From the NCBI GenBank assembly GCA_016748015.1, contig JAAOMT010000280.1, positions 22,183-86,182 on the forward strand: 64,000 bases of DNA, written 5' to 3'. The DNA comes from Geosiphon pyriformis uo1. Its lineage: Eukaryota; Fungi; Glomeromycota. A program made the translations under genes and the position numbers. Shown one piece after another: positions 17,024-61,500 of this stretch (positions are counted from its first letter, which is position 1; each line of letters opens with the position of its first letter). Below the pieces are notes generated by a model that saw only the letters and a program-made list of their open reading frames with translations, made no database searches and was not told where the DNA came from.

Positions 17024-17968
17024 ATGGATCAGGTTAAACAATACACGTCGCATTTCGAAGATTTCCTCGAGAAATTCTCTCAACCTTTGAAGCCTTATAT
17101 TCCTGCAATTGCTCGTTTTTTAATTGTCGTCACATTTCTTGAAGATTCTTTGAGGATCATTTTTCAATGGGAAGATCAACTTTGGTACCTTGAAAAACAC
17201 CGTAACTTCCCTTGGGGAGGTTCTCACCTTTTTTTGGCCATCAATGTTATTGTAGGTTTATAGTAATTTTTTGAAATTGATGGGAATAATTAATTTCTCG
17301 AGGGCTAAACATCTAGAAGCTATTAATTATGCTGATACTCATCCCTCTTCATTCATCAATTAATTGTTTTTTCACTATAGATAATGCTTGGATGTTCTTT
17401 CTTAATTATCCGGCGCAAATATCCTGAATATGCTGTCAGTGGTTTGTTTGTAGTGGTGATTGCACAATCTATTGGCTATGGGCTCATCTTTGACTTGAAC
17501 TTTTTCTTGCGCAATCTCTCTGTGATTGGTGGTTTATTGATGGTTTTATCTGACGCCTTCTCCAAAAAAAAATCTTTGTTCCCTGGTTTGCCCCAATTAT
17601 CAGAAACAGATCGAAAAACTTATTTTCAACTGGCTGGTCGCGTTCTCTTGATTTTCCTGTTCCTTGGTTTTATTTTTAATGGGGAATGGACGTTGACTCG
17701 CTTGGGTGTATCTGTCATCGGTTTCATCGCCTGTATAATGGTGGTGGTCGGATTTAAGGCAAAATGGTCGGCCACCTTCTTGGTTTTATTCCTGTCAATT
17801 TTCAATGTCTTTATCAATAATTGGTGGTCGGTTCATCATACACACCCACAACGTGACTTTTTGAAATATGATTTTTTCCAGACCTTGAGTATTATGGGTG
17901 GATTACTATTGTTGGTTAACATGGGTCCTGGTGGAATTTCTCTAGATGAGAAGAAAAAGGTGTATTAG
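17024..17968 (+). CDS. ERV29: SURF4/Erv29 ER-Golgi cargo receptor, two exons
   Basis: ARFLIVVTFLEDSLRI, FFLRNLSVIGGLL, DFLKYDFFQTLSIMGGLL and C-terminal DEKKKVY; intron ~17252-17380. Confidence 0.96.
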
Positions 17969-38200: not shown

Positions 38201-39628
38201 AATTATCACCATAAAGAATACTAAACTTGCTACAAGCAAACAAAATTTTATTAGAGAGAATCTTTCTGGCAGTCTCAATTAACGCAATAGGCCAAGTATT
38301 TGTAAAAACCTCATCCCAGTCATAAGGCTTTGGAATCATTGACACTCATGCCCTTCTCTATAAAGTAGGCACCTTACCAACAATTATACATGTATTCAAC
38401 AGCTCCAGAAGACAACCCAATACCACATCACTACCACATTTCCACAATTCATTAGGAATGCCAGACAAGCCAGCAGCCTTGCCATTAAGAAAATCATTAA
38501 CCACTGAGAGCAGCTCATCCAAACTAATATCACACATTATCCCAGAAAAAGTATCATTCTACACATAATCTAAAAATGCATATTGGCGAGTCCAGAAATC
38601 AAACATCACCATAAGTATTACCTGATTCCTTGTTCATTCCATCATGACCTTATCCACTTTAGACTTCACCTCTTCAGATTCCAGAAGTAAGCCTCTATCA
38701 ACCACCAAATAATCAAGTATCATCTTGCAAAAAAGCCAGTCCAAAATACTTCTAATTATGTCTTCTTTATTAGAAGTGAAACTCTCTATGCATTTTTCTA
38801 TAGCTTTTCTAACAGAAGTCTCTTCTGTTAGCTTCAATTCAAACATTTTTAATTTTCTGTATTCCTTGCAAAATGAAGACAGATGCTTAAGAAGAACCCC
38901 ACTATTTTTACTCAATCTAACCAAATTAGAGAACGTGCAAGCTTTGTTTTCATTCAAAGTAAACCATTTTTTTATGAGACAGACAACTTTAAACATGTCG
39001 CCAGAGTGGATTACACCAAAAATTTTTACAACAAGCAACTCCAACCCAAAGAACTTTGAAGAATGTTTGTTCCTAGAGCAACAAAATTCACTAAACCACA
39101 GTCTGAAAAAAATCTCATCAGCAGACTCAATCATCTCTTTTTTCAAAATTGCCCACATAGTATCCAAATCACCACTAGCTTTGGCATTAGCAAAGATGCC
39201 TTTGATCAACAGAAGCCTTGCTGAAACACAATCCTTAAACTTATCTCACTTAAACATATCTGCATCTTTAATCTTGAACTTCCAATGATCTTTATTAGTC
39301 TGTCTGTGCAAGCTATTCAACTAAACATTCAAAAGCCCACCCAGACCAACCAACACCATAACAGCACTATGATTTATGTCAAAAAAATCCAAAACTGACT
39401 TGACTCAATGCTTGGCAACAGCAGATGACAGACTCTTACTAACTAAAATATAATTAATAGTTTTTTCAATCCCTTTCGAGTTGTACCACATAGGAGCCAA
39501 TGCCAACTGATGGCTGGCAAATGAATTGACCAGACCAAGACCCAGGCAAAACCTGAAACTTACACTCCTCTCAGACCTATTTTCATTAAAATCACCACTC
39601 AAAACAACAAAATTGCTAGTATTAACAG
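35221..39628 (-). mobile_element. Non-LTR (LINE) retrotransposon, 3' part: endonuclease C-terminus, RT, RNase H, CCHC, poly(A); pseudogenised
   Basis: VLSGDFNE, PIALIETARK, LQDMHKAYD, QGE, FVDDT, YRYLG-like HRYLG, RNase H YTDGS…SELQAV, CLLCGEVELLDHVF; T-run at 35221-35231 is the poly(A) tail. Confidence 0.92.
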
Positions 39629-40608
39629 TATTACTGGAGGTTTTTGGTCTTTTTTTTTAAATGTTGTTGATGCCTGTTTGCTGTAAATTTATGTTTTCTG
39701 GATGTGGTTGAACCTCCAGTAACTGAATTTATCTTCAAATTATCTCCTATAATTTGAACTGCTGGGCTTATAAGTAGAATGACCAATTTTTTGCCAGTTA
39801 CTTTATGTAGTTATATTGTAGTAAATGTCAACTCTTTCCTAGGAATTGCTTGTTTGGAAGCTCACTAAAAATGTGTAATTACTTTGCTGTGAAAGTCAAC
39901 TCTTCTACAGGAATCTTGTCTATAGGCTACCCTAATGACTGTAATCAGAAAATAAAAGAAAAACAAAAGAAATGTAAAAAAAATAGAATTCTGTCAAGGG
40001 AAACGTTTTTTATCCAGGCCTGGAGTCACTAACAGTTTACTGAAATTGGTAGCTAATCAATTTCGAAATGTTAGTTGGGTTTTTGGGGATTTTCCAAGTA
40101 CAATAATTAAAGAATTTGGTTTTTTGAATTATTTGATATTTATTTCTTTTTGTGTGTGTAGGAATTGTTTTAAGAGATAAATCTAAAGTAAAATATATTT
40201 TCTCGAAGAGAGAAGCTCTTCTTTTATACAACTTGTTGTAACACTATTCTATGAACTTGAACTTTGCTATTTTCTATAATTTTGCTAAACTAAAAATACA
40301 TTTTGGTAAACTACAAGTTATTTCTGTGAACTATATTTTGGCAAACTATCAATTATTTTGGCAAATTTCTTACAAATTTTGGCAAACTTTTTGAATGTTA
40401 CATAGTTCGGGGTATTGTATAATTGATTATCACAATTAGGTTACATTTGTGTTATGTATAAATTGGATTATTAATTAAATGATAATTTCGGATATATTTT
40501 GCTAATGTAATAAGTGATAATTTGAAATGATAATATATGCTAATTTAATGATAAGATTTATAAGGGTAATTTCATGCTAAACAATATCTCTAATTTTGTT
40601 TGGTAACA
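39629..40608 (-). repeat. 3' LTR (980 bp)
   Basis: TATTAC…GGTAACA; direct repeat of 48518-49497; adjacent to the polypurine tract gaggaggagg (minus strand, 40612-40621). Confidence 0.95.
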
Positions 40609-41296
40609 TAACCTCCTCCTCAAGACTGAGCTCCATCGAAGTCCAAGTACTGTCTGTAATTTCCAGATAATAATCCAAAATTATTGAAGAAATTTGGTCT
40701 GAAAATTGTTGAAATTTCAGTTCTGTGAGCTTTCCGATGTATTGAATCTTCAAAGGTTGTAAAATTGGGTTTTGTAGGATGTTTTCACAGGTGTGAAATA
40801 AGTCATAAAATCTAAGAGCAGCTCTTAATTTATAGTGACTGTTTGTAGATCCAGCTGTTGTTTTGAATTCATTGTGAAGTTGTTTTTGAATAGCTTCTTT
40901 TGTGAGATTTACTGCTGTAAGCTCCTGTTTTTGTTCATGAAGTGTTTTTCTAATGTAGAAATATCTATATATTGGAGTATAGTCGTGGTTTTCTTTATTA
41001 AGACACAGTTGAAGTTTTTGTTGAATAGTAGCATTTGGTGGAATACTAATAGGAGTAAACATTAAATTTTCTCTTAAAGCAAGCTTTAAAAGTTCTGGCA
41101 GGTGAATTCCAGAATAATTTCTTGTGTTCTTCTTATATGGGTGATATTTTCGTGAATTTGGGGCTAAATTTGTGATTATTTCTGTTTGGGTATAATTAAT
41201 GTGGTTTCCAGTAACAGTAATAGATAATTTGGGTATTGTTTTTAAAGCTAATATTAATTTTTGGGATAATTGTTGAATGTTTTGAGGAATAGTCAT
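40577..41296 (-). CDS. Additional ORF3 of the Gypsy element, unknown function (239 aa)
   Basis: Uninterrupted ATG-initiated ORF between integrase and the 3' LTR, reading through the PPT into the LTR. Confidence 0.65.
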   Translation of the reverse strand: MTIPQNIQQLSQKLILALKTIPKLSITVTGNHINYTQTEIITNLAPNSRKYHPYKKNTRNYSGIHLPELLKLALRENLMFTPISIPPNATIQQKLQLCLNKENHDYTPIYRYFYIRKTLHEQKQELTAVNLTKEAIQKQLHNEFKTTAGSTNSHYKLRAALRFYDLFHTCENILQNPILQPLKIQYIGKLTELKFQQFSDQISSIILDYYLEITDSTWTSMELSLEEEVMLPNKIRDIV

Positions 41297-41559
41297 TATA
41301 AGAAATTTGAAAATAAAAGAAAATTATTTTTGGTGTATGAGTTTTTATGTTATTTTTGTTTTGTTTTTGTGAGATTGTTTCTAAATTATAAGAAGATAAC
41401 TATAATAATAAATTTAATTTAAGTGTTCAAGTTGGGAGGTTGTTCAATAACAACTATTGGTTCTAAATTCTGGAGAATATCTTCGGGATTGATTAAAGGG
41501 AAATGTGTGCCAATTTGTGGAATTAATGATTCAGGATTGTTTCTGGAATTATAGTGTTT

Positions 41560-42620
41560 CAAACAATCTCTATGTGCAACTTTTGCTAGGATTTTGTCAT
41601 CAAATCTTAGGTTGTATGATCTGTTGTCTAGAATTTCATGAATAAAAAATGGTCCATCCCATTTATTTTCAAATTTTCCACTCTATTGTTTTTCAGCTTT
41701 AGTTTTGTGTAAGAGAACTTTATTTCCAACTTTAAATTCGTTGATAATAAGTGGTAATTTGTTGTCATGTTTTTCTTTTTGTTGAGCTTAAGAATGTTCA
41801 ATATGAGTTGCTGCTATTTGTTGTTTTCCTTCCAATGTGCTAAGCAGAGTGTAGGCTTTTTATTGTAGTGTTTCCTGGAAATTGTTTTTATCAATTGGTT
41901 GTGCTGGGTATGTTTCCACTGTGAAACTAATTGGTAATGTTGCTGTCCTTCCATAAGTTAAATCAAATGGAATGTGTTTTGTGGTATCTTGTTTTAGTGT
42001 TCTATATGCTAGTAATACTGATAGAATAAAGATATCCCACTCTTGCTTAAAATCAGTTGAGACTTTGGCTAATGACTCACACAATGTTCTGTTAAATGTT
42101 CTACAAGTCCATTTGTTTGTGGATGGTAGGGTGAAGACAGAGGTCTTTTGACATTGAATCATTCGCAAATTTCTTGTATTAGGTTGTTCACAAAGTGTGT
42201 TTCTTGATCAGATAAAAGTTCTATTGGGCATCTATGTTTACAAATAATGTTTTTATAGATGAAGTTTGCTACTGATTTCGCATCTGCTCATTGAATGGCT
42301 CTGGCTTTAGGCCATTTGGTGAAATAGTCTACAGCTACTGCAATATAACGGTTTCCTTGGTTTGTAATAGAGAGTAGTCTGACTAAATTGATACCAACTT
42401 GGTCAAAAGGCTGTCCAACTTTGATTGGGTTTAATGGTTCAGTAGGGTGTGTTCCTCCTCTTTTTTGACAACTATCACAAGATTCAACATATTCGTGAAT
42501 GTCTTTTCTCATTCGAGGCCAAAAGTAGTATTCTAGTGTTCTTTAAGTGGTGCTGTTTTTTCCGAAGTGTGTTGATAAAGGATCTGAGTGCATGTTGTAT
42601 AATATAGTCTCTTTTTCTTG
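41560..42620 (-). pseudogene. Gypsy integrase
   Basis: H..HFG, YFWPRMRKDI..YVESCDSCQ, PFDQVGINL, AVDYFTKW, LLAYRT, PFDLTYGR, KWDGPF; stops and frameshifts. Confidence 0.92.
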
Positions 42621-42959
42621 TTTTTGTATTAATCTGAGTAATTTGTCTGGGTTTTTAAAATTTCAATGATAAATAATGTTGTTGTGTAGAAAATATTGTT
42701 TGGTTTGTTGTTGTAGTTAATGTTTTTCATCTGGAGACCAATCTGTTGGGATTGTTAATGTTTCCAAATATTGTTTGAGATTGTTGTAGTTTTCCGAATT
42801 CATTGTTTGTTGGCTGTTTTGGTTGATTAAGTTGAGTGTTGGTTTTTGTGTTTTCTAATCTTGTCTCATTCTGAAGAGACAGTCAACATTGGTGTGGAGT
42901 TTTCCTGATTTGTGATGTACTATGTATCAATAGTTTGCTAGAAATCTTGTCCATCGGGT

Positions 42960-44150
42960 TTGTTTTGTGTTCAGCTAAGTATTTTTGTTCTGAAGCTATT
43001 TGAGTTCAATATTATCAGTAATAATATTGAATTCCTTTGGCCGAAGATAAAGGTTGAAATGATGTAGGGCCCAAATTACAGTTGCTGTTTCCAATTCAGT
43101 GGCAGGATAATTTTTTTCAGCTGGTTTTAATGTTCTGCTAGCATAAGCAATTACTCGCTCATTTCTATTGTCATCCAATTGTGATAGGATAGCACCAAAG
43201 GCAGTATAAGAGGCATCTGTTGCTAATCAGAATTGGTTGCCAAAATCTGGGTAGGCAAGAATTAGAGCTGTCGTTAGTTTTTCTTTGAGGATTTTAAATG
43301 CATTTCGGCATTCAGCAGTCCATTTGTATTTGACATTTTTGGTGGTAAGCTGGTTGAGAGGTTTTGCAATTTCTGAGAATCCTTTGATAAACTTCTGATA
43401 GTAGGAGGCTAACCCTATGAATCCTCTTAGTTCTGTAGTGTTTCGAGAAATTTTGAAGTTTTTAACAACACTGATTTTTCCAAGATCTGGTTTGATTCCA
43501 TCTTTACTAACAATATGACCAAGGAAGGCCAAGCTTGTTTTTTCAAAGTAGCATTTTTTGATGTTGAGTTTTAGTTCTGCTTTTTATAATTGTTAAAAAA
43601 CTTCTCGCAGATGTTTTAAGTGTAATTTGAACGATGGAGAATAAACATCAGTATTGTCAAGATAAACAACTACTGATTTCCAAAGGAGTCCTTGGTACAC
43701 AACATCCATTAATCTCTGAAACATTGCTGGTGTATTGCATAATCCGAAAGGCATTACATTAAACTTGTAATTTTTGTCTTGGGTGGTGAATGCTGTTTTG
43801 GGGCAATCTTTGGGATCCATAGCAACTTGCCAGTAACAGCTTTCTAAATCTAGTGTTGAAAAGTATTTGGATTTTCCAAGGGCATCTAACATGTCATCAA
43901 TTCGGGAAAGGAGATAGGCATCTCCAATTGTAACACTGTTAAGTTGTCAATAGTCAACACAAAATTGTATCTTTCCATTTTTCTTTTTAACTAGCACTAC
44001 AAGTGAAGCCCAAGGACTCATGAAGGGTTGGATGAACTCGTTTTTAAGCATTTGTTGTACTTCTTCTCAGATGAATTGGTGGCTTTTTGGAGCAACTCGG
44101 TAGGCTTGTTGTCACTTTGGTTTGGCATCTCTTGTGTAGATTTAATGTTA
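42960..44150 (-). pseudogene. Gypsy reverse transcriptase and RNase H
   Basis: SPWASLVVLV.KKNG, FCVDY*QLN, YFSTLDL..YWQ, KTAFTT, MPFGLCN, YLDN (from YLDD), FLGHIVS, ATDAS, VIAYASR, ELE. Confidence 0.95.
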
Positions 44151-44689
44151 AACCAAATTGGTTCTTCTTAAGTCATTGTTGTTTTTGGCAAAAATATCAG
44201 CAAATTCTGCAATTAGCTCTTTGAGCTGGTTTTGTTGTTGTGGTTTAAGTTGTCCCATGTTGATTCGAGATAATTTTTCTATGACAACATGGTAATTTTC
44301 AGAGCTGGGGTTTGGGTTGATTTTTGGTAGTGAATGTTCAATAATTTCAGAGAAATCGGAGACTGTTTGGGGTAATTCTTGTTGAAATATATTACTGTAA
44401 ATAACTCCAATTTCTAAATTATTTAATAAAACTATGGGGTAATTGTTGGGATTGTAAAAAGTAACTTGGACTTTCTTTGTTCCTTCTGGAATATAAATGT
44501 TTAGGATCGAAATATTATGTTTCAAGCAGACTTGTTCATTGGACTCAAAAATTTGTTGTGTGGTTGTTGGCTTTGGACAGATGTAGATTTCTGGATGTTT
44601 TCCAAAGGGTGAGATGGTAATTGGTTGTGGAAGTCTGAGAATCTAGTGGGATTCATTCTGTGTGTTAAGAGCTATATTAACTGGAACTG

Positions 44690-45110
44690 TGAATCGTCCA
44701 GTTGAACCAAAACCTTGGGTTTTTCTATCACTTTTTCCTAATTGTTCTCTTTGATTGACTAGTTGCAAACCCGAAATGTTGATTAGGGGTAGGTAAATAG
44801 CTTGGGCAATTTTTTCAGCATGTTTGATCTTGAATGGTTTGTCAGTTTTATTTTGAAGCATTACTGTAATGTCTCCAGTATATCTAGCATCGATTATTCC
44901 TTCTCTAATATTGATTCCTTTACTTGCCAGAGAGAACCAGAAGGCAATTTGAACCATTGCTCCTGGCGGAATTTCGAGTGCAATTTTGAAGTTGATTTTT
45001 GTAAAAGATTTGGGTTTGAGAACAAGAGTATCTTTGTCTGGATATCTTAGGTCATATCCAGCATCAATTTTGTGTGCTTTTTTGGGTTTTATTCTTTGTC
45101 CGTTGTTGTT
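44690..45110 (-). pseudogene. dUTPase domain within the Gypsy pol, upstream of RT
   Basis: All five dUTPase motifs are recognisable: DAGYDL, SLASKG, GIIDARYTGDI, KIAQAI and RKTQGFGSTG. Confidence 0.92.
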
Positions 45111-46099
45111 GAAGTATTTGAGTTATAAGGCAGGCTGATTTTTGATAAGGTAGATGGGTGTTGTTTCAATTTCTTCTGTTGCTTCAGGTTCTCCAAATTC
45201 AATTTCTTTCTCATCACTTTCACTGGACAAGGGAATACTAAGAGTGTAGCATTCAGGACACCATTGTTTATCACAAGGCATAATGCATTTTTTACATAGC
45301 CTAATGTTCATTTGTTCTGATTGTTGAATTTGAGCTTCTTGGGTTGGGTAGGTGTGACTTGCAATTTGGTGGTAGACTTCTACTTCATCTTCGTAATCGA
45401 ATCCAGCTAATTCCATGGTGTATTCAATGTATTCTGCTTTCTTCATTTGACGGACATCTTCTTTGGTAGCTCTATTAATTAATGCCATTGCTAAGTTGAA
45501 AATCATCTTGGCATCATGGAGGTAGTAATAAAGTTTGTTGAGAGCACTATTATATGCCACATTAAAAAGTGTTCCTCTTTTTACTTTTTTGAAATTGATA
45601 AAGCATATTGGCAGATCTGATTGCAGACTCCTCCTCTCATTGCTACATTAATCCAATTGCATTCTTCTGGTAACATATCTTCACAAGTCAAACAAGGGAT
45701 GTTGTCCCATTTTCCACTTTTTTTTATTAGATGGCCCCATCGTTCTCTGTGGCAAGCCTTGCAGTAATAACAAGTATGATTTTTATATTTTTCTTCAGGT
45801 GAAATGCAGGCTCCCATTGATGAGAGTTTTTTGTGGCAATCCTTGCATTTAAGTAGAATGTAAGGGTGTTGTTTTCGTGGTTCTGGTTTTGAATAGGGGA
45901 CATTCCATCTGGTTGTCACTGGTTTTTTTGTTTCAAAAGAATTATTTGTTGAAAAGTACTGTTGTTCAGTTTCATCAGCCCAATTGGAGGTTGATTCAAG
46001 TGCCATAAATGTTTCAATGATGGGTTTTTCCTCTTCCAGTTCAAATTCAAAAGCCAGAGCTTTCTCAGAGCATTTGTTAAATGTACTACAAGTAGCAGG

Positions 46100-46500
46100 T
46101 ACTCAGGTATGTTGTTCTTGATAGGAGAGTTGTAATTCTTGGGTTTCTCAGTCTAATTTTACATTGGCTTTTTGGAGCCAATCATTTCTGACAAGGGCTT
46201 GATACTGGGGTGCATCCATTACAAAAACTTTGACTGGAATAGTGATTTCATCAAGAGTAAATAGAAAATTGTCAATTTCTCCTACTGGGGTCTTTTTCAT
46301 GCCATCGGCAGTTACAATTACTGTTTGAACTGGTTGGTTGACATTTCTTTTCAACTGTTGCATTAACTGGTAGGTGATAATGCTTCCAGTAGATCCACTG
46401 TCTAGGATCAAGTGAATTGTCTTTCCTTCAATTTTTGCTTCAGTGTACATAGCCATGATTGCTTTTTGTTTGTTGGCGGCTGCATTGCTAAGCAGGAATG
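46100..46500 (-). pseudogene. Retroviral-type aspartic protease
   Basis: LILDSGSTGSII…TADG…ALVRNDWL. Confidence 0.9.
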
Positions 46501-46799
46501 GTGACTCATTTGCTTTGAACTCAAAAGAGAATATATCTAAAAGATTGGTGTTTTTAGCAATTCTGGCTGGTGGAATTGTGATGAGAGTATAGGAAGAGTT
46601 TTGTTGTTGTGCTGCAGCTCTACCTTCCAAATGTGCAGTATGGTAAAAATTCTGTTCTTTTGGCATTGTTAGATAACTGGGTTGAGTGTGATAGTGGTTG
46701 GGTCTTGGTTAAGTGGAATTTTGGGAAACCAATTGGTTGTTCAAACTGATTCTATTGTTGTTTACTTGGTATTGGTTTTGTGGTATGAATTGATTTTGT

Positions 46800-48500
46800 G
46801 TAATCAGTCTTTGAGCAGGTACTTGATAATATTGGTATTGCTGTTGGATTGGCTGTGGGGTGGGCTGATAATAGTTATTTTGGTATTGGGGTCTTGGTGG
46901 ATAGTGAGCTGGTGGTGGTGGTTGATAATAAGATTGCTGTGGTGGAGAGTAATATTGATTACTCCTATTTTGTTGGTCTCATTATAGCTTTTTGCAATCT
47001 CTTTTCCAGTGGCCAGAGATTCCACAGTAATGGCAATTCTGAGGCTGGTTATTAGAAAGTGGTGCAAAGTTATTTTGATTTCATCTTTGGAGTGGTTGAT
47101 ATCTTTGGGGTTGCTATTGTTGTTGATTGGTAAAATAGTTTTCAACTTTCTTTGCGAGTTGGTCAATTTTCTCTTTAGCTGCTAAGTTGGTTTCTCCAAT
47201 GACTAAGTTCATGAGTTTTGTACAATTGGCTTCTTCCATGGCCATTTCATATCTCTTTACATGCTGAATGGCAGAGTTTAAATCTTCTGGGGCATGTGGG
47301 CAAACCTTTTTAATCAGTTTATTTTTTAAACCAGCGATAAATTGATCTAAGATTTGAGCATTGGAATAATAATTGTTTGTTTCGAGTTGGCAAATTTGTC
47401 TGAGAAGTTTGTTGAATTTCCCAATATAAGTCATAACAGATTTGGAGAATTCTTGTTTGATATTGTAAAACCGATTTCAAAGGGTAATGGAGGTATTATT
47501 GTCAGTGAACTGTTCAAGGAAGGCTGCTTTGAAAGTGTTCCAATCATTGAATGGAATGGCCAAGTTTTCAAACAATTCTCCTGCTGTTCCTTTGAGAAAG
47601 TAGAGAATTGTTCTTAACATTCTGGCAGCATTCCATTCATTTGCATCTCTAGCTTTAGTAACTTGATCGAGCCATTCTTGGGAACTGGTCTCAATGTTTT
47701 CTCCATTAAATTCAGGGATTTTTGTGATGTATGCTGTCATTTTGTCTTTTTCATTTTCACTGTCTATTGATTTTTCTTCAGTTATTTCAGAGTTGTTTTC
47801 TTTATTTGCTGCTGTCTCAGAGTGTTCACTTTGATTTTCAGCTAGAAAATCAAAAAAATTGGAACTAGTTTGAAGGAGTTCTTGCTGTCTGATGGGACTT
47901 CTGAGTGATGTAAAATTTTCTGGTCTCACAAATCAATTTAAAGGTGAATTAGGTGTTTGTGCTTGTGCAAATGAAGCTGGAAAAAGTGTGATGGTGAGTG
48001 GAAGTTTTGAACTTGTTTCTTGTTCAGGTGTTTGTAAGTGTTTGGCAGTTGTTTTTGGTAGTATTGGAGTATTTGGGGTGGTTTTTGAGTATTGCTTCAA
48101 TTTGTGTTTGCTTTTGTTGCTTGTTTCTGTTTCCAATTTAAAATCAATAGAGTATTGAGACTGCACTGGATATGTTTCTTCACAGTACTTGATAATGTTA
48201 AAATTAAGTTCTTGAAAGTAAGTGGCAAGTGTTTCACTGTTAAGGTCTTCAGTTTCTAACTGTGAATAGTGTGCTAAATTATTATAAAGGTTGCTTCTAA
48301 CTTCTGAGATATTGTAATTTCCAAAAAGATAATTGTTGATGCGGTTTTCAATATATTGGTATACTGATTTCTTGACAACTTCAATTCCATCTGAAATGTT
48401 GAATCTTTGCTTGTAGTGGATGTAAATTGACTGGTAGTACTCTAGAGTTGTTGCGTCTGGTGTGGTCACCACTTTGAATTTGTTTTTGCTGTGTTGTTTC
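46800..48500 (-). pseudogene. Gag with CCHC zinc knuckle
   Basis: IPEFNGE, LKGTA, W..FKAAFLEQF, FIAGL and CHYCGISGHWKRDC (~46995-47037); interrupted by stops. Confidence 0.88.
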
Positions 48501-48517
48501 CATGAGAGAGCACTAAA

Positions 48518-49497
48518 TGTTACCAGAGGTTTTTGGTCTCTTTTCTTAAATGTTGTTGATGCCTGTTTGCTGTAAATTCACGTTTTCTGGATGTGGTTGA
48601 ACCTTCAGTAACTGAATTTATCTTCAAATTATCTCCTATAATTTGAACTGCTGGACTTATAAGTAGAATGACCAATTCCTTACCAGTTACTTTATGTAGT
48701 TATATTGTAGTAAACGTCAACTCTTTCCTAGGAATTGCTTGTTTGGAAGCTCACTAAAAATGTGTAATTACTTTGCTATGAAAGTCAACTCTTCTACAGG
48801 AATCTTGTCTATAGGCTACCCTAATGACTGTAATCAGAAAATAAAAGAAAAACAAAAGAAATGTAAAAAAAATAGAATTCTGTCAAGGGAAACGTTTTCT
48901 ATTCAGGCCTGGAGTCACTAACAGTTTACTGAAATTGGTAGCTAATCAATTTCAAAATGTTAGTTGGGTTTTTGGGGATTTTCCAAGTACAATAATTAAA
49001 GAATTTGGTTTTTTGAATTATTTGATATTTATTTCTTTTTGTGTGTATAGGAATTGTTTTAAGAGATAAATCTAAAGTAAAATATATTTTCTCGAAGAGA
49101 GAAGCTCTTCTTTTATACAACTTGTTGTAACACTATTCTATGAACTTGAACTTTGCTATTTTCTATAATTTTGCTAAACTAAAAATACATTTTGGTAAAC
49201 TACAAGTTATTTCTGTGAACTATATTTTGACAAACTATCAATTATTTTGGCAAATTTCTTACAAATTTTGGCAAACTTTTTGAATGTTACATAGTTCGGG
49301 GTATTGTATAATTGATCATCACAATTAGGTTACATTTGTGTTATGTATAAATTGGATTATTAATTAAATGATAATTTCAGATATATTTTGCTAATGTAAT
49401 AAGTGATAATTTGAAATGATAATATATGCTAATTTAATGATAAGATTTATAAGGATAATTTCATGCTAAACAATATCTCTAATTTCATCTAGTAACA
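48518..49497 (-). repeat. 5' LTR (980 bp)
   Basis: TGTTACC…AGTAACA; followed on the minus strand by a PBS-like tttagtgctctctc (probably eroded TGGTGCTCTC; primer tRNA not identified). Confidence 0.95.
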
Positions 49498-51860
49498 ACA
49501 GCCTTAACAATAAGCCCAAAACAAATGCCAGAAAAGGCACCAGCATACAAACCAAGCACAGTCACCAAAAGCTTGCCTTTGAACAGAAGATGTATTGAGA
49601 TAACATGACCAGAGACCATCTCAACCTTAAAAACATGGCAAGCCAAAGAATTGTTCATAATCACAGCAATACCAGCACCAAAATAACCAACATCCAAACC
49701 AGAAGTAAAGATCCAAACCCTCTCAAATTTATCCTTGATCCATGGCCCAGAGAAAGGCCTCAACTTCATTTCAGTAACAAAAAAAACCATACTCTCAGAG
49801 CTTACATGCCAATAAACAATGTCTGCCTGTTTGGCTGGAACATTGAGACCCCAAACATTACACATAGTAAACTTCCAAACTAGGTCATTTATTTGGAGAA
49901 AGAATGCAAAGAAGCACTCGAACTAAAGCACAAGCCATCCAAATGTGCTAACACCGAACCAATAGAAGCCTCCAAAGATGCCAACTTAGACTTCAAGCCA
50001 CCCACTTTGTTAGTGAAAATCCTGAAGCTACTAGAACTGAGAACATGCACACCAACATCAACAGTAGAAGAAGAGGAAGCAGACAGTATCGAAGTGCCAT
50101 CCAAAATCATATCTGAGCCTGAACCTGAAGCCAAAGATACAGAAGCATCAAGAGGAGAGACAAAAGAGGAAGGCACCAAAGATACCAGTTCAGCATTATC
50201 AAGACATCTAACAATAGTGGACACTTGGTCAGAAAGAAGCTCAAATGAGCATTCCAAAAAAGCCAAGCATTCATTCAAAGAAGAAACATTACCAATGTCA
50301 TGATAAGAAGAAGAAAGAAAATTTGAGCTGGGACCAGCAGAAAAACCACGAGAGAGAGGGGAAGCCACTGAGACCACTTGGGCTCAGGACTTTCCACCAA
50401 AGGCAACAGGGTGAAAGATAGGAACCTCCTTCTTTTTATATAACTTGACCAGCTGAAAACACCTCTTCTCAGAAACAAAACCTTTAAAAGACTTAACTGA
50501 AGATGACAATAACATAGAACCAACTGGAGCATCACACTCAAGAGCTAAATGCCCAAAACATCCACACTTCCCACACCGAACCAAATTTAATCTAGCCCAT
50601 GAGAGCCACATACCACCAAAAACAGGCTCAGTGCAAAATGCTAAATCCAAATCCTTCTCAGATTCAAAGCCAACCACAGCACAACAAAACCTATTGCCAG
50701 TGTTCAAAGATCTATTAATGATACAAGTCTTACTGCCAGCCCTATCCAAAAGAGTACCAAGATCATGTGCAGTTGTTTCTACTGGCAAGGTAAACAGAAG
50801 TGCCCTAAAATGGTCTCTTGATGTCCAGATATTATAATCTCTCACAGCTTTTACCACACGCATTGAGTTTTTCCTGATTAGGAATGACCATCTCGACACC
50901 AACAGATTGGCTTGACTCAATTTGGCAAATTCCACCACAGCTTTCTGCCATATACCAATTAACTAAATCTTGATTGATTTAATATTACCAAATTCGGTGA
51001 CTACAGTAACAATCATTTTCTTTGGTGTATCTATAGGAATTTTTTTGATTACTATGGCCCGATCTGAATGCACTCCTGATTTTTTGAGATTAGTGTTTAT
51101 GACAATCCCTTTTTCCCTGACCAAAGACGCAGCCATATTCATGCTTTTTTCAAAAGTGAAGATAAATCAGATGATCCCTTCAAATTTTGAGGGAGTAGTG
51201 GCCTCCCCAAAACCATTGACTGATGAAAAATTTTTTCTAATTAACTAAGTTTTTGCCATTGTCGAAATCCCTTCTACAGCACTAAGATTAATATTAAGAA
51301 CAAAAGATTTTTTGACAGACACCTCAATCTGAGTCTTAACAATTTTAGGGTCAATCTATTTCTTTTCTAGAGAGATAGAAAGACGAGAAGGAAGAGAGAC
51401 ATCTTCATTATCATCCATGACAAAATTAGGAGAACCAAGAGGTGAACTGAAAATGGCACCAGTATTGATACACTTGGCTTTAGGAGTATTGGTGGCTGAA
51501 TCCAGAAGAGACCCAACATTAATGCTGGTCATATTAGTGCTTTCCTTATTACTAGACACACTATCCACATCAGAAAACACACTATTACCAAGCTCAGACC
51601 TGTCCAGAGAAATATCCTTTTTATCACCTAAGTATTTGACATTCCCAAGCACAACTCTTTTCTTTTACGAGAAGGAACCACCAGTAGGATCATAAAAAGC
51701 ATTCTTTGGTGTTTTTTTTTTAGACATGTTGCTACTAGAGGCAGTCTTCAGGTCCACGAAAAAGAGGTTATTAAAAAGAGAAATTGTGAAATACTAACAA
51801 GAAAAAATAAAAAACTTCTTTATTAGAAAAATACTTTTTGAGGGTTTATGGAAGTAAAAG
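49498..51860 (-). mobile_element. LINE 5' part: ORF1 (CCHC knuckle) and start of the ORF2 endonuclease
   Basis: ORF1 from MSKKKTPK (51727) with CGKCGCFGHLALEC; ORF2 CNVWGLN…VTEMKL…GIAVI. Joining across the Gypsy restores IVKAVNTSNFVVLSGDFN. The 5' end is approximate. Confidence 0.9.
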
Positions 51861-51899: not shown

Positions 51900-54800
51900 T
51901 TTAATTATTATATTACTTAATATTTTTATGCTTTACATAATAAACTTAAAAATATGATTCTAATTGTTTTAAATAAAATAATCATAATATTGTTAAAGTT
52001 AAATTAAAATAAAATATTAATATTAATAATATAGATATTTTTGATAATATTATTAATAAAAATATATTTTTTAGTTAATAATTCTTTGAAAACTTTGGTT
52101 ATTTAATGTTAAGTATAAATAAAATTATTAAATAAATAAATAATATAATTATTAATAGTAATATATTAGTTATATATATATAATATTTTTTTAGAATAGG
52201 TTTTTTTTAAATTTAATATAATTTAATTTGAATTGAGTTTATGTCTAATTATATGTAAAAAACATATAAATTTTATTTAATTTAGATTATTTATATTGAT
52301 TTATTATATTAATATATATTAATATTAAGTTATATTATTTAATATTTTTTTAAAATTATTTTTTATTCTAATTTAAGTTTTAATATCTAAATTTTACTAA
52401 CTTTACTAATATTTAAAAATTAATTAACAGTTATTAAAAAAATCATAAATAAGAAAATATTTTAAATATTAATATTATTATAATTTTAAATTATTTGGTT
52501 TTAATTTATATAACTACTTTTTTTAATTTAAATAATAATGTTATTAAATTATTTTAATTGTTTAAAATTTGTTCTATTTTGTTAAAAAATTTAATATTAA
52601 ATTAAAAAAATAATGTTAATTATAACTACTTAGTTTTTTTTATAATAAAAAGTTAATAACAAATATATTAATAAAACATATAAATTTTAATTTTAAGAAT
52701 AATTTAATTAAGTTTATCAAAAAAAATTATTAAAACTTAATAAAATATTTTAAAATAAAAAAGTATAAATAAAATATTTTTGAACAATTAATTATATGTA
52801 ATATAAAATAAAAAACTATTTTTTTTGGATATTTTTCAAAATATTTTTTTAATTTAAAATTTGTTTTTTTTGTAAAAAATAAAATCTTGATTTTTTTGAT
52901 TTTTTTTAATGTTTTTATTAATTTTTTTGGCTATTAACAATAATTTTTTTGTTTTAAATAATACCAATAATAATATATTTGTTAAAATTTGTTCAAATTA
53001 ATATGTAATTATATTATTTAATATATTAAAATTTAGTTAGCTTTAAAAGCAAAACAAATTATATTTTTATAAATAATTTTAATTAATAATAATATTAAAT
53101 TACTTAATTACAAAAATTGAATTAATAAAATAAAAATTAAAGCATTTTTTTTGTTTTGTAAAAACATTATTGTTTTTATTAATATTTAAAACTCATTTAT
53201 TAATCATTAAAAATTTTGTAAATAAATACTTTTATTTAGATGTTTAATATTATTATAAAAATTAAAATAATTTATTTTAAAATTAGAATTAAAGTTGGTT
53301 TCTAAAAACAATATTAAATTTTTTTTGTATAAAATTTACATTTTAAATTGTTTTAAATGTTATTATTAAAATTAAACTATAATATAAGTATTTTAAAAAT
53401 ATCTAATACTTTAAAATATAAAAACTTTATAAATAAAACATATTAATAATAAAAAATGCATTATTAAATAATTTTTAATAGATTTATAAACTAATTTATT
53501 TTTTATAAAAAATGATTTAAAAATTTATTATGTAATTAGATTTTTTTGTAAATACTTAAAATAAAATTTAAAAATTTAAAAAATTTATATTAATAATAAT
53601 ATTAATTTATTATTTTATTTATTATTTAATTAATATAAGATTAAATAATTGGTTTAAAAAAAAATATAATGATAAAAATAAAGAATTAAAACAATTCAAA
53701 TTTTAAAATATTGAATAATTTGTTCATGAAATAATATTCTTTATAATTTTTATATTTATTGTATATATACTAACTTTCAATAAATATGTTAGAATTTTTA
53801 ACAAAAAAAATTGCAATTATTTGTAAAAAAAATCAGAAAAAGATAAACTTTATTATATCTATTTTTTTTATTAAAAAATAACTATTATTATTTTTTAAAA
53901 GTCGAACAGATTATATATTTGTTAATTTAAATAAAGAATTAAAAAGTTTCAATTAATTTTTTAAATACAGTAATAATATATTTATCTATATATTATATAA
54001 AAATTAATAATATATTATAAAACACATAATTTTTTGGTATATACAACTTGAATTAAAAAATAATAGTTTACAATTAATACAAAAAATAAAAAATTTTTTT
54101 ACTATCATATAGCAAAAAATACAAATACAAATTTGTAATAAAAATTGCTTAAAAAAAATTTAATAATTTAATAATATAAATAATATATTATTGCTTATAA
54201 CTTTTATTGATTGTTTTTAAATTAAGCTAACAAATATATACATATCTTTAATTAATATTTGATAATAAAAACAAATTTCAAAAATTATTAAAATCTTTAT
54301 AAAAGTTACTAATTATATAATTAAATCTTATTAAATTACATATTTTACCAAAAATATATATATATATACAATAAATATATTTTGTAATCTATATTATAAC
54401 AAATAATTTATTAAAACAAGAAATTTGTTTATTTAATAAGTGTAAAAATGAATACAGAAAACATAAAAGTTAAAAAAAAATTTAATACATAAAATATATA
54501 AGTAAAAATTTATTATTTTAATATTATATAAGATAAAAATAATTATACACAAATTGTATGTTTTTTAAAAAACAATAAAATTAACATATAAATTATCTAT
54601 ATATAGAAAATAGAAAATACAATAATTTTATTAAATATAAAAAAAAATAATGCTTTAAGTTTTTTTTAAAATTAAGTAAAAAATATTTTTAATAATCTAA
54701 TTAAAACAATAAATAATAATAAAATAACTATTAGTTAACATCTTAAAAAAAATATTTTAATATATTAAGCACTTATTTAAAAAATAGTAAAAATTACTTG

Positions 54801-57800
54801 ATAATATATAATATAATATTATGTATTTATAATAACATAAAACAAATATTATAATAAAAAACCAAAATATTATTACGAAATTTTTTTCAAAAATTATATT
54901 AAAATTATAAACTATTAAGTTTTGGTAAAAAATTAATTACATTATTTAATTGTTTATGTTTTTGTTAATTAAAATAAGTTATAAATTAGTTTATTATAAT
55001 TTTATTATAGATTAAAACTAATAGCATGTTAAAATTATTAAAATATAATATATTTTATAAATTATAATACTAATTAATACTATATATTTAAATCATGTAA
55101 ATATGTTAATTTTATATTACAAATATAAATTAAAATCAATAAATATTATTTATTTTAGTCAAAAAAATTAATTTAAAAAACTTAAATTTATTTTAATAAA
55201 TATAAATAAAAACTTTAATTAATAATTATATTAATATTTTTGTTAATAAAAATAAGTTTAAAAAACTAATATAGTTTAATATTAAATTAATATTAAATTA
55301 ACTAAAATTATAAAACAGAAAAAAAATACAATATATATTAAATAATAGATTAAATAAATTTATAATTATTACTATTTATTTTAATAATAAAAAAATATAA
55401 AAATTTATTTTTATATAGATTATCAATAATATTAAATATAACAACAGCTATTTAACTTTTATTATTCAAAATTGTTTAATATTTTTAAAGAAAAAAATAG
55501 TTTTTAATATTAAATTTAAATAATATTATCAAAAATTTTCTATTCTTTTCTTGATATTGTTAATGCTGTTTTAATATTAATTTTGCTATTAATAAAAATT
55601 GGTAACTCTTCAATAAGCTAATTTTTTTTTATATTTTAGATTATATATACTGTTGAGTTTATAATGAAATAACCAATTTTATGCCAATTACTTATATAAT
55701 TACTTTGTGGTAAAGTCAATTTTTTTTACAAAAAAATCTTATTTGTAAGCTTTTTAATTTAATATGTAGTTACTTTGCTATAAAAATTAATATTTCTATA
55801 GAAAATTTTGACTATAAATTATTTAATAATATAAAAAGAAAATAAAAGAAATTAAACTCAAAAAATATTAAGAAAGTTATTTCAAATTCAGGTCTAAAGA
55901 TTATTAACAGTTGCTAAAATTAGTAGTTAATCAATTTCAAAATATTAGTATAAAATAATTAATTTCGAAGCAATAATAATTAAAAAATTTATGTTTTTCG
56001 AGTGAGTTTTAGTGGAGTTAATTTGCAAAAAAAAATTTTAAGAAAAAATATCTGGTAAAAATTTTTTTTTTTGAAGAAAAAAGCATTTTTTTTATATAAT
56101 TTATTATAATATTATTTTATAATTTAGCACTTTTTTTTTCTAATATTTTGGTAAATTAAAAATACATTTTGTCAAATTACAAGTTATTTCTGTGAACTGT
56201 GAACTATTTTGGTAAACTGTTAAATATTTTGTCAAATTATTAAATATTTTTACAAATTTCGAATATTATATAATTCAGTATATTACATGATCTGATCATT
56301 ACAATTTGGTTACATTTGTATTCTATACAAATTGGATTATTAATTGGATGAAAATTTGGTTAATTTAATAAAATAATAAGTAATAAATTGAAATAATAAT
56401 ATATGCTAATTAATAAGAATTATAAAAATAATTTTATGCTAATTAATATCTTAATTTTTAATTGGTAACAACAATATTAAAAAATTATAATAAATCCAAA
56501 AAATTAAGAAAAAACAATATTTATTACCAAAAAAAAATCATAAATTTAAAATAATAAATATTTCAATTATTTTTTAATAATTAATAAAAATAATTTATTT
56601 AAAAATACTATAAAAATTAATAATTGTATATTTAAATAATACTAAAATGTTTTTTAATACTTTTAATAAAAATTTATACTATTTGTAATAAGTTTTTAAA
56701 TAATTATAATTACCCAAATTAAAACTTAATATTAATAAATATTTTTTTAAAAAAACAAAACTTTAAATTTTAAACCATATTATTAAAAATAATAATTAAC
56801 AATTAGAAAACAAACATACCAAATAAAATATTATATTATTATTATAAAAAACATAATAATATTAATAATTTATTATAAATAATAAATATAAAAGTCATAA
56901 TTAATCTTAAAAAATAATATAAATAATCAAATATATTAATAATTATATTAATATGTATTTAAATTTTATTATTAAATATTTTTATTATAAAAAAATAATA
57001 AAACAAACCAAAAAACTATATTATTAATTTAATACATACAAAATTATAATGTTTTTTAAAAAAAGATAAAACAAAACTAATTAAATCAATTAAAGTTAGA
57101 TAATTATTTAAGAAGATTAAAATTAACTGAATTAAATTATTATTATTAATTATCAAAAATAACAAATATATTAAAATTATTATAAATTATTTAATTAAAT
57201 AACTAAAAACAAAAGCTATTTAAAAAGCAAATACCAAATTAATAACTAAACTTATATATTAAAATTTAATATATTAACATAAAAATTGTTATTAAATTAA
57301 AAAACAAAATTTGTAAATAATATTTTAATAAAATTAAGTTAAAAATTTAAAATAAAAAATCATTATTATTTATTATATTATTTATAAATAAATAACTTAA
57401 TCAATAGATTATTATATAAAACATTAAATAAAATTAGACAAAAAAATCATAAAAAATAAAATTTATTTATATTATTAATATTATTTACATATCAAACAAT
57501 AAAGCAAAATACAACTTAAATAATATTATTTAAATTAATATACAAAAAAACAATAATATTATTGATTAAAATAAAAATAAAAATATATTTAATTAAATTA
57601 ATAATAGAAAAAACATTTTAAAAACATGTTAAAAAGAATATATAACTTAATAAAAATACAAAAAAACAAAATTTGAAAATATTAAAATTTACAAAAAAAC
57701 AAAAAAAAAACTAATAATAAGTTATTAAATAAATCAGTTAAATACAAAATTAAAAACAAAATATTATTATATTATATTAAAACAGAAAAACAAAGAATAA

Positions 57801-59000
57801 AAATTTAATCTTAAATAAAACAATTAATTTTACATTTATTAAATACTTAAAAATAAAGCTTATAAATTACAATAAAAAAAGTTTTAAAAAAAACAGCATA
57901 TAATAATTAACTAAAATTGTATTATATCAATTTATTATTATAATTATTATTTATATTATAGTTAAATATATAATAAATACTAATTAAACCAGATAAAATT
58001 CGATAAGATTTAATATTAATTATTATTATTAGATGTAATTTATATTATAATTAATTAGCAAAAAAGTATATAAGTATTAAAAAATACATAATAACAACAA
58101 AAAAATAAAAATTATTAACAATATTAACTTTATTATCTAACTATTGTTTTAAATATTATAATATAAAAAATCAAATATAAAAATAATAATTAGAAATAAA
58201 AAAATCAAATATAAAAACATTTAAATATTTAAAAAAAAAGCAATAAAATATTTCAAACAAAAAAAAATCAAAAAAATATTATTGGATAATAAAACAAATA
58301 GACAATTATATTAAAAGAAAATAAAAAAGACTTTAAACAATTCAATAACAATTAATTAACCCAGAAAATTAATAATTAAAAACCAAAAAAGTTAGAAAAA
58401 ACAATTTTTGTTAACTTATTATTACTATTACTTAGAATAATAGCTAAATATTTAAAACTTGTATTTAAACAACTTCAAAAAAATGTTTAACAAATCAATT
58501 ATATGTTAAATAAAACAATTTTATAATACATTTTAAAACCATCTATTAATTATTTGTAATCTTCTAAAAATACAGTAAAATATTGTTATATTTAGTAATA
58601 CAAGTATTAATAATTAACCAACTGAAAAAAATAACAATTTAACAATTTAAAACATTAAAAAAAGAAATCACTATAATTATAATAGAAAAAAAAGTAATAA
58701 TAAAGCTTAATTCTATAATAAAAATTTAAAATATTTATAAAATTTTGATAATAACATAAAAAAGTTTCAAGAAAACTTTATTAAAATTCTGTCAGTTTTA
58801 ACATTATTTTCACTTTTTTAACAAATACATTAATAGACAAATAAACAATTATTGTAATAATAATTTGTTTAAACAACAAATATAATTAACTGTAGCCAAT
58901 TTTGCCAAAAATATTAACAGTTGAACATAAAATCTCGTAATATTATTTCAGATAATATGTTAAATGAGACTAGTATTTAAAATCTTGTACAAAAATATTT
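51900..59000. other. Ultra-AT-rich block (probable eroded transposons)
   Basis: About 7 kb with very few G/C and no ORFs; contains a recognisable solo LTR. Confidence 0.75.
55524..56470 (-). mobile_element. Eroded solo LTR related to the Gypsy LTRs
   Basis: Colinear with 48518-49497 (aaaatacatttt, tacaagttatttctgtgaact, ggttacatttg, aaattggattattaatt, aatatatgctaatt, ends ggtaaca); flanks ataa/acaa fit a 4-bp TSD with one C>T. Confidence 0.85.
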
Positions 59001-60848
59001 TGATCAAAACAGTTTTTTTGAAATAAAAAAGTTTTAAATAACTGTCAAATTTTTGAATTTATTCGAAATTATAATGTTAAATCTCATAGGTCTGAAAAAT
59101 ATAAAACTAATTTTGATGATTTAAATATTTTACTTACAATAACCAAGAAAAGTGTTTTAAAAATTTGGCAAAAATTTGTTAAAAAAATCGATAATATCAA
59201 TATCTGTAATTTTTTTGGTGTATATATAAAGCAGTTATTAATAGTATAAACTAAAATTTACAAACAAATTGTCAAGTATTATTTGTGCCATTTACTTGTA
59301 TTACAACTATTTAGATAATAACTGTTTACTATAAAGATTTTGAATAATTTTGAATTTTTTAAAATCCATGGCGAAATAAGTGAATGTTGTAAAATTTTCT
59401 TTTAGCCAAAAAAATTTTTTGGTTTAAAAATAAAAACTTGTGATTTGAATTGTTTGTTTATTAAAAAAAAAACAAAGACAATAACTATGTATTTGGTGTA
59501 TTTGCAATTTTTTTTGGACTTATTACCATTTCAGTATTGTTACATAAAAGACCCAATTATCTTGAATAAAAAAAAACCACACTTTGGTGAAGAGCAAAAC
59601 AATAATAAAGTGGGAAATTAGACATTAATGAACATGATCAGAAAACTGTATCCAATAAGAAGTTAAGTAGACCAAACTGATGTTCAACTACCTTCTATCA
59701 AGATTGTATTTACAGAAAGCTCAAGTTGAACGATGTTGCAACATATCAAAAAAGATGTTTGAAGCTTCAGATGAGATATCATTGAGATTGGCAAATGGAA
59801 ACCGAAAAAGCACAAAAAAGTTTAAAGAACTCAAAAAAAGGCAAAAGACTTTAGAACCCTTGCTATAGAAAAAAAAAATTTTTCGGGTTTTCCTTGCTGA
59901 CGAGTTTCAGACAAGCTGGTAGTGCTCACATTTTTAGGAAGAGGGCACCAAGTGCAAAAAGTTTCATGTTTAGCTGAATAAAAAAAACGATAGCAAGAGA
60001 AGTTTCTGACTAGTAAATGATTTTTTCCTGTGCCAACAGTGCACGCCTGACATGTGATACAATCGCAAGACACTACCAGAGGTAAACAGTGTTGTTACAT
60101 CAACATTAAATACTCAGAATTTACACAGGACCAAAAGTGCTCTGGTAAAATGCCAAGAGATATTTGAAATTCTAACGGTGTCCATACAGATAACTAAAAC
60201 ATTCATGATCTGAAAACAAAACATGTCTTTATTTCTAAATAATTTTTATTGAAAAACAAATTTTCGGAAGGTAAATCATCATCATCATCATCTTCTTCTT
60301 CATTATCATCACCATCATAATCATCATATTGTTTAACAACTTGTTCTTTCCTTGGGGGTAATAAGATAAGATATAAAAACCAGGATATTAATTGTTTTTG
60401 ATAGAGCCTGGTTTTAAAATGTCACATTTTTTTCAACAACCAAAAATTAAAAAGCATAGATTTCTCAGCTGGGGAGGATCTAAACATAATTATTCTAGTT
60501 TTTAATCTTTTATTTGTACTCAATCTATTAATTTTAAATTAAAATAAACTGGCGATATATGTTATCATTAATTATGATAGAAGCTTCGATTCAAATTATC
60601 AGTCTTAAATTGGAGTCTTTAACAGGAAAGTATGAATCACTAGAGTAACTTTTCAAAAGTTCCTAGAACGATATGGAAAGTGGGAGATTTTAACTTTGCC
60701 TATTTGAGATGACGTGGAAATTTTAGAATTCTTAGGAAAACGGTTAAATTTCTTGTTTCTAAAATTGTTAATTTTTTTGAATTGTGCCCAGTCACTTGTT
60801 AACCACGTAAAGTCTGGGTGCTAGGAATCAAGAAATAAAAAATTTCAA

Positions 60849-60855
60849 TATAAAT
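60849..60855 (+). promoter_or_regulatory. Putative TATA box of the peptide gene
   Basis: TATAAAT ~150 bp upstream of ATG 61005; weak evidence in AT-rich DNA. Confidence 0.35.
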
Positions 60856-61004
60856 AAGAGACATTTGAAAGAACCTCTTCATCAATTAATTTTTTTGTAT
60901 TTGGTCTTCTTAAGTCACTACAAAAGAAAATAAAAAAACAATTTCTCTTTATTAAAAACTCAACGAAAACATCAATTACTCTTTATTAATTCAAAACTTT
61001 CAAA

Positions 61005-61500
61005 ATGAAAACCTTTGTTTATACCTCCTTATTGGTCGTTTTTCTTGTTTGCAATATTTTGACTGCAACACTGGTGAACGGTAAATATTGAAAAAGTTGA
61101 ACTTTTATTTAATTACTATCTAATATAAAAAAATTTTTTCTATTCATTAATCAGGTCAAAGATGCACAAGTAAGTTTTTCTCTTCTTCTTCTTCTTCTTC
61201 TTCTTCTTCTTCTTCTTCTTCTTCTTCTTCTTCTTCTTCTTCTTCTGTTTCTTCTTCAACCACTAATACTTTAGGATAAATAAAATTTTATTAATAATGT
61301 TGAAATTTTGAATTTCTTTCCATTTATGACGGTAATTCGGATTTTTTTATATACAGCCAATAGTTGTGAACGTAAGTTTTTCACTGAATAAAATTTGTAA
61401 ATTGACTTAATGATATTTCTTTTAAAACAATATTTATTTATTTATTTATTTTTTAATAGCTTGTCGAGTTTCTTGCGAAGGGGGCCAATGCACTTGTTAA
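61005..61500 (+). CDS. Small secreted cysteine-rich peptide, 48-aa precursor MKTFVYTSLLVVFLVCNILTATLVNG-QRCTTNSCEPCRVSCEGGQCTC; exons 61005-61080, 61155-61169, 61357-61371, 61460-61500
   Basis: Three canonical phase-1 introns (GTAAAT..CAG, GTAAGT..CAG, GTAAGT..TAG) give a 147-nt open frame: hydrophobic signal peptide with V-N-G cleavage site, six Cys, then TAA. Confidence 0.88.
61181..61246. repeat. (TTC)n microsatellite in intron 2 of the peptide gene
   Basis: About 21 uninterrupted TTC units. Confidence 0.97.

Follow-up and report, generated by a model that had tools for sequence, protein, structure and literature searches.

Structure of the predicted gene

In the window (the whole stretch of 64,000 nucleotides analysed here), a four-exon gene model can be read from the sequence of the plus strand at positions 61005-61500. 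Its exons, 76, 15, 15, and 41 nt in length, join into a single frame of 48 codons plus a stop. This model was proposed in an earlier note on the same DNA; all of its coordinates and letters were found in the sequence, and the model is arithmetically exact. The description of the gene as invisible to ORF finders was also borne out, because a 28-aa ORF is the only one listed at the locus and the other strand contains nothing meaningful.

Exon 1 (61005-61080, 76 nt) starts with the ATG and comprises 25 signal-like codons, with one further base that opens the Gly26 codon. It is followed by intron 1 (61081-61154, 74 nt, GTAAAT...CAG, 15% GC), which contains a CTAAT sequence approximately 30 nt 5' of the acceptor, and by exon 2 (61155-61169, 15 nt, 40% GC), a micro-exon carrying the first cysteine codon. 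Intron 2 (61170-61356, 187 nt, GTAAGT...CAG) has a GC content of 27%, which is due to a microsatellite (TCT/CTT) of approximately 26 units at 61181-61257 (77 nt). The second cysteine codon lies in another micro-exon, exon 3 (61357-61371, 15 nt, 40% GC). Intron 3 (61372-61459, 88 nt, GTAAGT...TAG, 14% GC) contains a T-rich tract 5' of its acceptor, and exon 4 (61460-61500, 41 nt) encodes Cys 3-6 and ends with a TAA stop codon (61498-61500). Exon 4 is the GC peak of the locus (49%). In the model, the exons are joined through consensus donors and acceptors, as had been claimed, and they have GC contents of 36-49%, whereas those of introns 1 and 3 are 14-15%.

Phase 1 applies to every intron, and intron 1 coincides with the predicted signal cleavage site. 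Phase-1 introns, with the first one at the signal cleavage site, are the usual layout of genes for secreted peptides. Exons 2 and 3, each of 15 nt and bordered by phase-1 introns on both sides, are symmetric, every combination of exons remains in frame, and the two micro-exons make up 30 of the 147 coding nucleotides (20%). Internal exons of 15 nt are rare in fungi; intron-definition splicing, which tolerates tiny exons, is usual in these organisms. An origin of the two micro-exons by duplication was also considered. The exon 2 and exon 3 regions are 46% alike and have only their splice signals in common, so that a duplication is unsupported.

The region upstream of the start codon (60712-61004, plus strand) is an ATG-free leader that may contain the 5' UTR and the promoter; it is unique in the genome and ends in the start context tcaaaATGa. 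The nearest upstream ATG, at 60709, is the sole one within 300 nt of the start codon. The resulting ATG-free leader is 296 nt in length, and a gap of such length is found in 4.6% of the background gaps. A TATA-like box, TATAAATA, is present at 60849-60856 on the plus strand, approximately 155 nt 5' of the ATG, and represents a putative core promoter; this motif is frequent by chance in AT-rich DNA and is by itself weak support for a promoter. Together, the ATG-free leader and the TATA-like box add mild support for the presence of a gene.

Predicted peptide

The product of exon 1 contains one Lys near the N-terminus, a hydrophobic stretch of approximately 21 residues, and then the sequence V-N-G, which fits the -3/-1 rule with Val at -3 and Gly at -1 (cut after Gly26). 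A second site that fits this rule is located after Ala21. The signal-like exon 1 passed a strict rule-based heuristic; the hydrophobic stretch is long for a signal peptide, and the call is that of this heuristic. Cleavage after Gly26 would leave a mature peptide of 22 residues with the cysteine pattern C-x4-C-x2-C-x3-C-x4-C-x-C, which is exactly the tail given in the earlier note and forms the end of the joined frame. In exon 4, the order is CxxxC, four residues including Gly-Gly, and then CxC. The predicted mature peptide contains six Cys residues (27%), is rich in Gly, Ser, and Thr, and has no aromatic residue; its sole aliphatic residue is one Val. Its computed pI is 6.1, the charge is approximately -0.3, and the mass is 2365.6 Da in the reduced and unmodified form; three disulfides would lower this mass by approximately 6 Da and an N-terminal pyroglutamate by approximately 17 Da. 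The precursor, with 48 residues and no pro-region, is unusually short. In its small size, its richness in Cys residues, their even number, and the lack of a Pfam match for the exon pieces, the peptide agrees with the small secreted Cys-rich proteins.

Genomic context

The locus is situated in gene-poor and very AT-rich DNA: the GC content ranges from 8 to 26% between 52 kb and the end of the window, and in the next 10 kb past the window, it is 9-28%, and no ORF is longer than 77 aa. The gene had been described as isolated among repeats, which is only loosely right. The flanks consist of unique AT-rich DNA apart from microsatellites, and the nearest transposon remnant lies approximately 9.5 kb upstream. 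The gene-poor, AT-rich character of the setting holds, and this setting also carries other small secreted Cys-rich genes, as described below.

Several other features were observed upstream of the locus. Positions 36000-51700 of the window, 9.5-25 kb upstream, contain what looks like one or more degraded LTR retroelements on the minus strand, with broken ORFs and a strong GC skew; a reverse transcriptase (weak), a retrotransposon-type aspartyl protease, and a weak zinc knuckle were detected there. Between the retroelement and the peptide gene, positions 52000-58000 have a GC content of 8-11% and consist mostly of low-complexity tandem repeats. Just upstream of the peptide gene, at 59550-60270, lies a unique block of approximately 700 nt with approximately 38% GC and no ORF over 80 aa. 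This block has no second copy elsewhere in the genome and no Pfam-testable frame, and it might represent a set of decayed exons or give a non-coding transcript. An (ATC)n microsatellite comes next, at 60275-60327. More distantly, a SURF4/ERV29 cargo-receptor gene identical to NCBI G9A89_005413 is encoded on the plus strand at 17024-17965. It has a single phase-0 intron (17252-17380, 129 nt, GTAGGT...TAG, 29% GC), and its 194-aa ORF at 17384-17968 is 86% identical to that of Ambispora leptoticha and 100% identical to G9A89_005413.

Comparison with chance expectation

The splice signals of the locus were compared with a background of 34 kb of AT-rich flank. GTAAGT occurs there at 0.18/kb per strand, whereas two copies are present within 200 nt at this locus, both on the plus strand. 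The first donor, GTAAAT, is weak and frequent by chance (0.78/kb in the same AT-rich background).

Complete gene models were then evaluated with an enumerator. It required that the first exon be signal-like and end at a consensus donor, accepted only YAG as acceptors, and set the intron length to 50-250 nt and the minimum exon length to 9 nt. From the ATG at 61005, eight models were obtained in all, and the one described here contains the most Cys residues. No signal-like first exon with a donor was found in 68 kb-strands of real AT-rich flank. Six were found in 4 Mb of order-3 Markov sequence, none of which led to more than one Cys. When exon 1 and its donor were kept and the next 720 nt were dinucleotide-shuffled in 181,734 trials, a consensus-spliced six-Cys model appeared in one of the 181,734 trials and models with five or more Cys residues in seven. 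Shuffling within exons 2-4 with fixed borders (200,000 trials) yielded an open frame with at least six Cys residues at a frequency of 1e-5.

As a control with real DNA, both strands of the whole 145-kb contig and of 200 kb of another contig, C653, were searched (345 kb). Under the strict rules, this locus alone was returned; relaxing the rules added long Cys-poor junk models and two genuine-looking genes in the neighbourhood. Signal-like first exons at a consensus donor occur at approximately 10 per Mb per strand in real DNA. Combined with the rate in the shuffles, this density gives an expectation of approximately 0.01 chance models in the whole 128-Mb genome (approximately 2,600 signal-like first exons x 5.5e-6). 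Therefore, judged by the shuffles and the real-DNA control, the central claim of the earlier note appears to be well founded far beyond chance: the sequence looks like that of a hidden, spliced gene whose product would be a secreted peptide of very small size with six Cys residues.

Other secreted cysteine-rich genes on the contig

The two further small secreted-type Cys-rich genes returned by the enumerator are located on the same strand of the same contig (designated C564, in whose coordinates the window is 22183-86182). One is located 12.5 kb beyond the six-Cys locus, outside the window (C564:96178-96563, corresponding to L133:1679-2064, plus strand). It is preceded by TATAAATA at L133:1480 and has the start context caccATGa; its first exon (97 nt), which is signal-like, has a phase-1 GTATGT donor at its end. 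With a TAG acceptor at 1894 (L133), the mature part would consist of approximately 55 residues with seven Cys residues, and with an AAG acceptor at 1912 (L133), of 50 residues with six. No counterpart of the 88-residue product was found in a collection of 5.8 billion proteins, and the gene is therefore apparently unannotated. The other gene, G9A89_005425 (P0121, 91 aa; C564:128369-128832, corresponding to L131:2187-2650, plus strand), is a hypothetical protein gene at NCBI. It has an additional small exon encoding a Lys-rich tail, and its annotated junction between the signal exon and the phase-1 intron is the same as that picked independently by the enumerator. No relatives of G9A89_005425 were found outside Geosiphon.

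The mature parts of these two neighbours are paralogous, being 44% identical over 34 residues with a pairwise E of 8e-9, and share the motif IGCF-[DE]-GC; as judged from their sequences, they are a small Geosiphon-specific family of predicted secreted six-Cys peptides. The family resembles the six-Cys gene in its contig and strand, in the arrangement of a signal-peptide exon followed by a phase-1 intron, in the presence of six or seven Cys residues, and in the lack of relatives outside Geosiphon. It differs, however, in having mature parts of 50-55 residues, another Cys spacing, and two or three exons with no micro-exon. The signal peptide of the six-Cys gene showed no similarity to that of the gene at C564:96178-96563, and the mature parts were compared by Cys spacing alone. 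This context raises the prior of the six-Cys locus being a real gene and indicates that short secreted genes have been missed in this genome.

Search for homologous sequences

The earlier note had proposed a possibly undescribed family of peptides. This part of the proposal was not supported by exon-wise queries, which identified the gene as single-copy: searches of its own genome with the exon 1 DNA, the exon 1 protein, and the exon 4 DNA returned the locus itself only, as did a search in which the last eight residues were represented by degenerate codons and no more than two mismatches were allowed. Looser Cys-framework patterns matched hundreds to thousands of TGT-rich repeats in the genome and no look-alike. 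Thus, neither the exon 1 and exon 4 queries nor the Cys-pattern search revealed a paralogue in the same genome, and no relative was found elsewhere with the exon-wise queries.

In public metagenome contigs, the exon-4 pattern of Cys residues, Gly-Gly, and stop occurred at at least 120 loci; among the matches listed, none was accompanied by a fitting frame upstream or by a signal peptide, and these are apparently chance matches. The same scan also caught a recurrent family of short, bacterial-looking ORFs on contigs L010, L014, L028, L080, L092, and L093, with a Lys/Thr-rich N-terminus and a C-terminal Cys cluster ending in CCGGVC-x-C and a stop. These ORFs may encode a ribosomal peptide precursor and are unrelated to the six-Cys peptide gene.

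The 33-aa frame of exon 1 gave no match among 1.84 billion representative proteins, which is a weak test with so short a query; on this result, the four-exon gene is probably not annotated. Searches of Pfam and PDB with the exon pieces (the exon-4 frame of 24 aa, a very short piece, with E up to 10) yielded no match, and no description of such a peptide or of secreted peptides of Geosiphon was found in the literature. From these searches, it seems likely that the gene is single-copy and lineage-restricted in Geosiphon pyriformis.

Comparison with known peptide groups

The peptide had been compared with CS-alpha-beta defensins, and a mini-defensin had been named as one possibility besides a toxin or an effector. 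Members of this fold follow the order C...CxxxC...GxC...CxC, with a beta-hairpin of at least approximately 9 residues after the helix and mature lengths of approximately 34-50 residues. With the fungal (plectasin type), insect, and plant representatives, the predicted peptide shares the number of six Cys residues, a CxxxC with a later CxC, a Gly placed two positions ahead of a Cys, and, as far as predicted, signal-peptide-mediated secretion. CxxxC (mature residues 11-15) and CxC (20-22) are present, but the full order of the spacing rule is not. The mini-defensin assignment itself was not supported. Only two Cys residues follow the CxxxC and the other two precede it, the gap between CxxxC and CxC has only 4 residues instead of the 9 or more between helix and hairpin, the mature peptide has 22 residues in all as opposed to approximately 34-50, and its net charge is approximately neutral, whereas that of defensins is positive.

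A closer resemblance was found to the small secreted Cys-rich proteins and candidate effectors known from fungi, among them arbuscular-mycorrhizal species. Like the predicted product here, these proteins have a signal peptide, a small size, a high Cys content, and no known domain, and they are lineage-restricted and encoded in gene-poor AT-rich DNA near transposon remnants. However, they usually have 50-300 aa, as compared with 22 mature residues and no pro-region here, and the present gene has no further copies, in contrast to an expanded family, and has its coding sequence split by two 15-nt exons.

Two groups from other organisms were also considered. The nodule-specific NCR peptides of legumes have 20-50 aa with four or six Cys residues, are encoded with the signal peptide in exon 1, and include cationic, anionic, and neutral members (PMC9515463). 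The likeness to them lies in a host of intracellular nitrogen-fixing bacteria, in very short secreted Cys peptides, and in a mature part encoded after an intron. In contrast to the single four-exon fungal gene described here, NCR genes form a plant family with hundreds of members, usually with two exons and nodule-specific expression. Since the genome analysed is that of a fungus, membership in the NCR family was rejected, and the likeness is one of analogy, not homology. In the micro-exon genes (MEGs) of schistosomes, 10-20 symmetric micro-exons form most of the coding sequence (bioRxiv 10.1101/2023.06.21.545858). Like the present gene, MEGs have a signal-peptide exon followed by symmetric micro-exons, for which 15 bp is the commonest size, retain the frame when exons are skipped, and are hard for annotation pipelines. 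They differ in having introns of up to 5 kb (74-187 nt here), in being restricted to Schistosomatidae, and in not being Cys-knotted. An assignment to this type was also rejected because the locus has two micro-exons amounting to 20% of the coding sequence. As far as can be judged from sequence, the gene is best filed as an orphan among the fungal small secreted Cys-rich peptides, one that is extremely short and unusual in being built with micro-exons.

Interpretation of the locus

The features described above point to a real and expressed four-exon gene that probably gives essentially the 22-residue six-Cys peptide. A different main product of a real gene is conceivable and rather unlikely. 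Skipping of both micro-exons would leave a four-Cys peptide of approximately 13 residues, and skipping of one a five-Cys form, all in frame; very short internal exons are generally often skipped, and cleavage after Ala21, the other site that fits the -3/-1 rule, would release a 27-residue product without an N-terminal Gln. However, the single-skip forms would have an odd number of Cys residues, both micro-exons are flanked by strong GTAAGT donors and YAG acceptors, and the Cys codons of the micro-exons contribute to the improbability found in the within-exon shuffle, which argues for their use. A metallothionein-like, metal-binding peptide instead of a disulfide-knotted ligand appears highly improbable. 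The CxC, CxxC, and CxxxC spacings, the Cys content of 27%, the absence of aromatic residues, and the richness in Gly, Ser, and Thr would suit such a peptide, and fungal copper metallothioneins have 25-26 residues; yet metallothioneins are cytosolic proteins without a signal peptide, whereas a signal-like exon precedes the Cys-rich part here, and thiols would oxidise in the secretory path.

The locus might also be a look-alike produced by chance, that is, a Cys-rich frame threaded through the abundant GT/AG pairs of AT-rich DNA, with nothing transcribed or spliced in this way. The searches with the exons found no homologue, this DNA is rich in GTAAAT, TATA boxes, and branch-like motifs, and the genome was read in >2000 windows. 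Nevertheless, we consider this explanation unlikely in view of the expected genome-wide count of approximately 0.01, the frequency of 1e-5 in the within-exon shuffle, the absence of anything comparable in the real-DNA control, and the GC contrast between exons and introns, which is independent of the frame. Another explanation, which we regard as improbable, is a dying or newly born gene with an intact frame at a silent or barely expressed locus, either a relic of a larger family or a functionless de novo frame. The absence of other copies and of relatives, the position beside transposon debris in very AT-rich DNA with few genes, and the 77-nt microsatellite in intron 2 would be in line with it. 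On the other hand, the splice signals are all intact, as are the start context and the stop, and six Cys codons in 22 would be expected to decay fast if unselected under strong AT pressure. Even taken jointly, a chance origin and a silent locus are not a likely explanation.

For the expressed gene that we favour, we infer transcription from a TATA-type promoter. Intron-definition splicing would remove the three short phase-1 introns, giving a 48-residue pre-peptide whose hydrophobic N-terminus would direct its entry into the ER. For so short a chain, translation ends before the signal leaves the ribosome; because the chain would be complete before the signal emerges, ER import would probably be post-translational. 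Signal peptidase would most likely cut after Gly26 or, alternatively, after Ala21. The 22-residue product would then oxidise to form three disulfides, for which the CxxxC/CxC motif suggests the pairs Cys3-Cys5, Cys4-Cys6, and Cys1-Cys2, and be secreted, and its N-terminal Gln may cyclise. Given that 27% of its residues are Cys, that it has no aromatic and a single aliphatic residue, and that its charge is approximately zero, a rigid extracellular ligand or effector of a protein target (a receptor, channel, or enzyme) is more likely than a cationic, amphipathic, membrane-breaking antimicrobial.

Geosiphon belongs to Glomeromycotina and hosts Nostoc inside its cells; no other fungus is known to house a cyanobacterium in this manner. 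By analogy, an ultra-short, neutral, triple-disulfide peptide might be delivered to the symbiosome and control the growth or differentiation of Nostoc, a role for which we see only a slim chance. In Geosiphon, the peptide would then have a role like that of NCR peptides in legumes and of symbiotic Cys-rich peptides in some insects, and the symmetric micro-exons would allow both four-Cys and six-Cys isoforms. If this were true, the control of an intracellular nitrogen fixer by peptides of its host would have been invented independently in a fungus.

If the locus is not transcribed, it will be useful for calibrating the prediction of micro-exon genes in AT-rich genomes. If it is transcribed as modelled, the precursor of 48 residues would be among the shortest secretory precursors, and its product among the shortest triple-disulfide peptides, known from a fungus, built with two 15-nt exons that standard annotation misses. 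The peptide would be easily synthesised and would be relevant to the way in which Geosiphon manages an endosymbiosis that is unique. In addition, the secretome of early-diverging symbiotic fungi would have been under-counted, and the neighbouring 88-residue gene is another one that has apparently escaped annotation.
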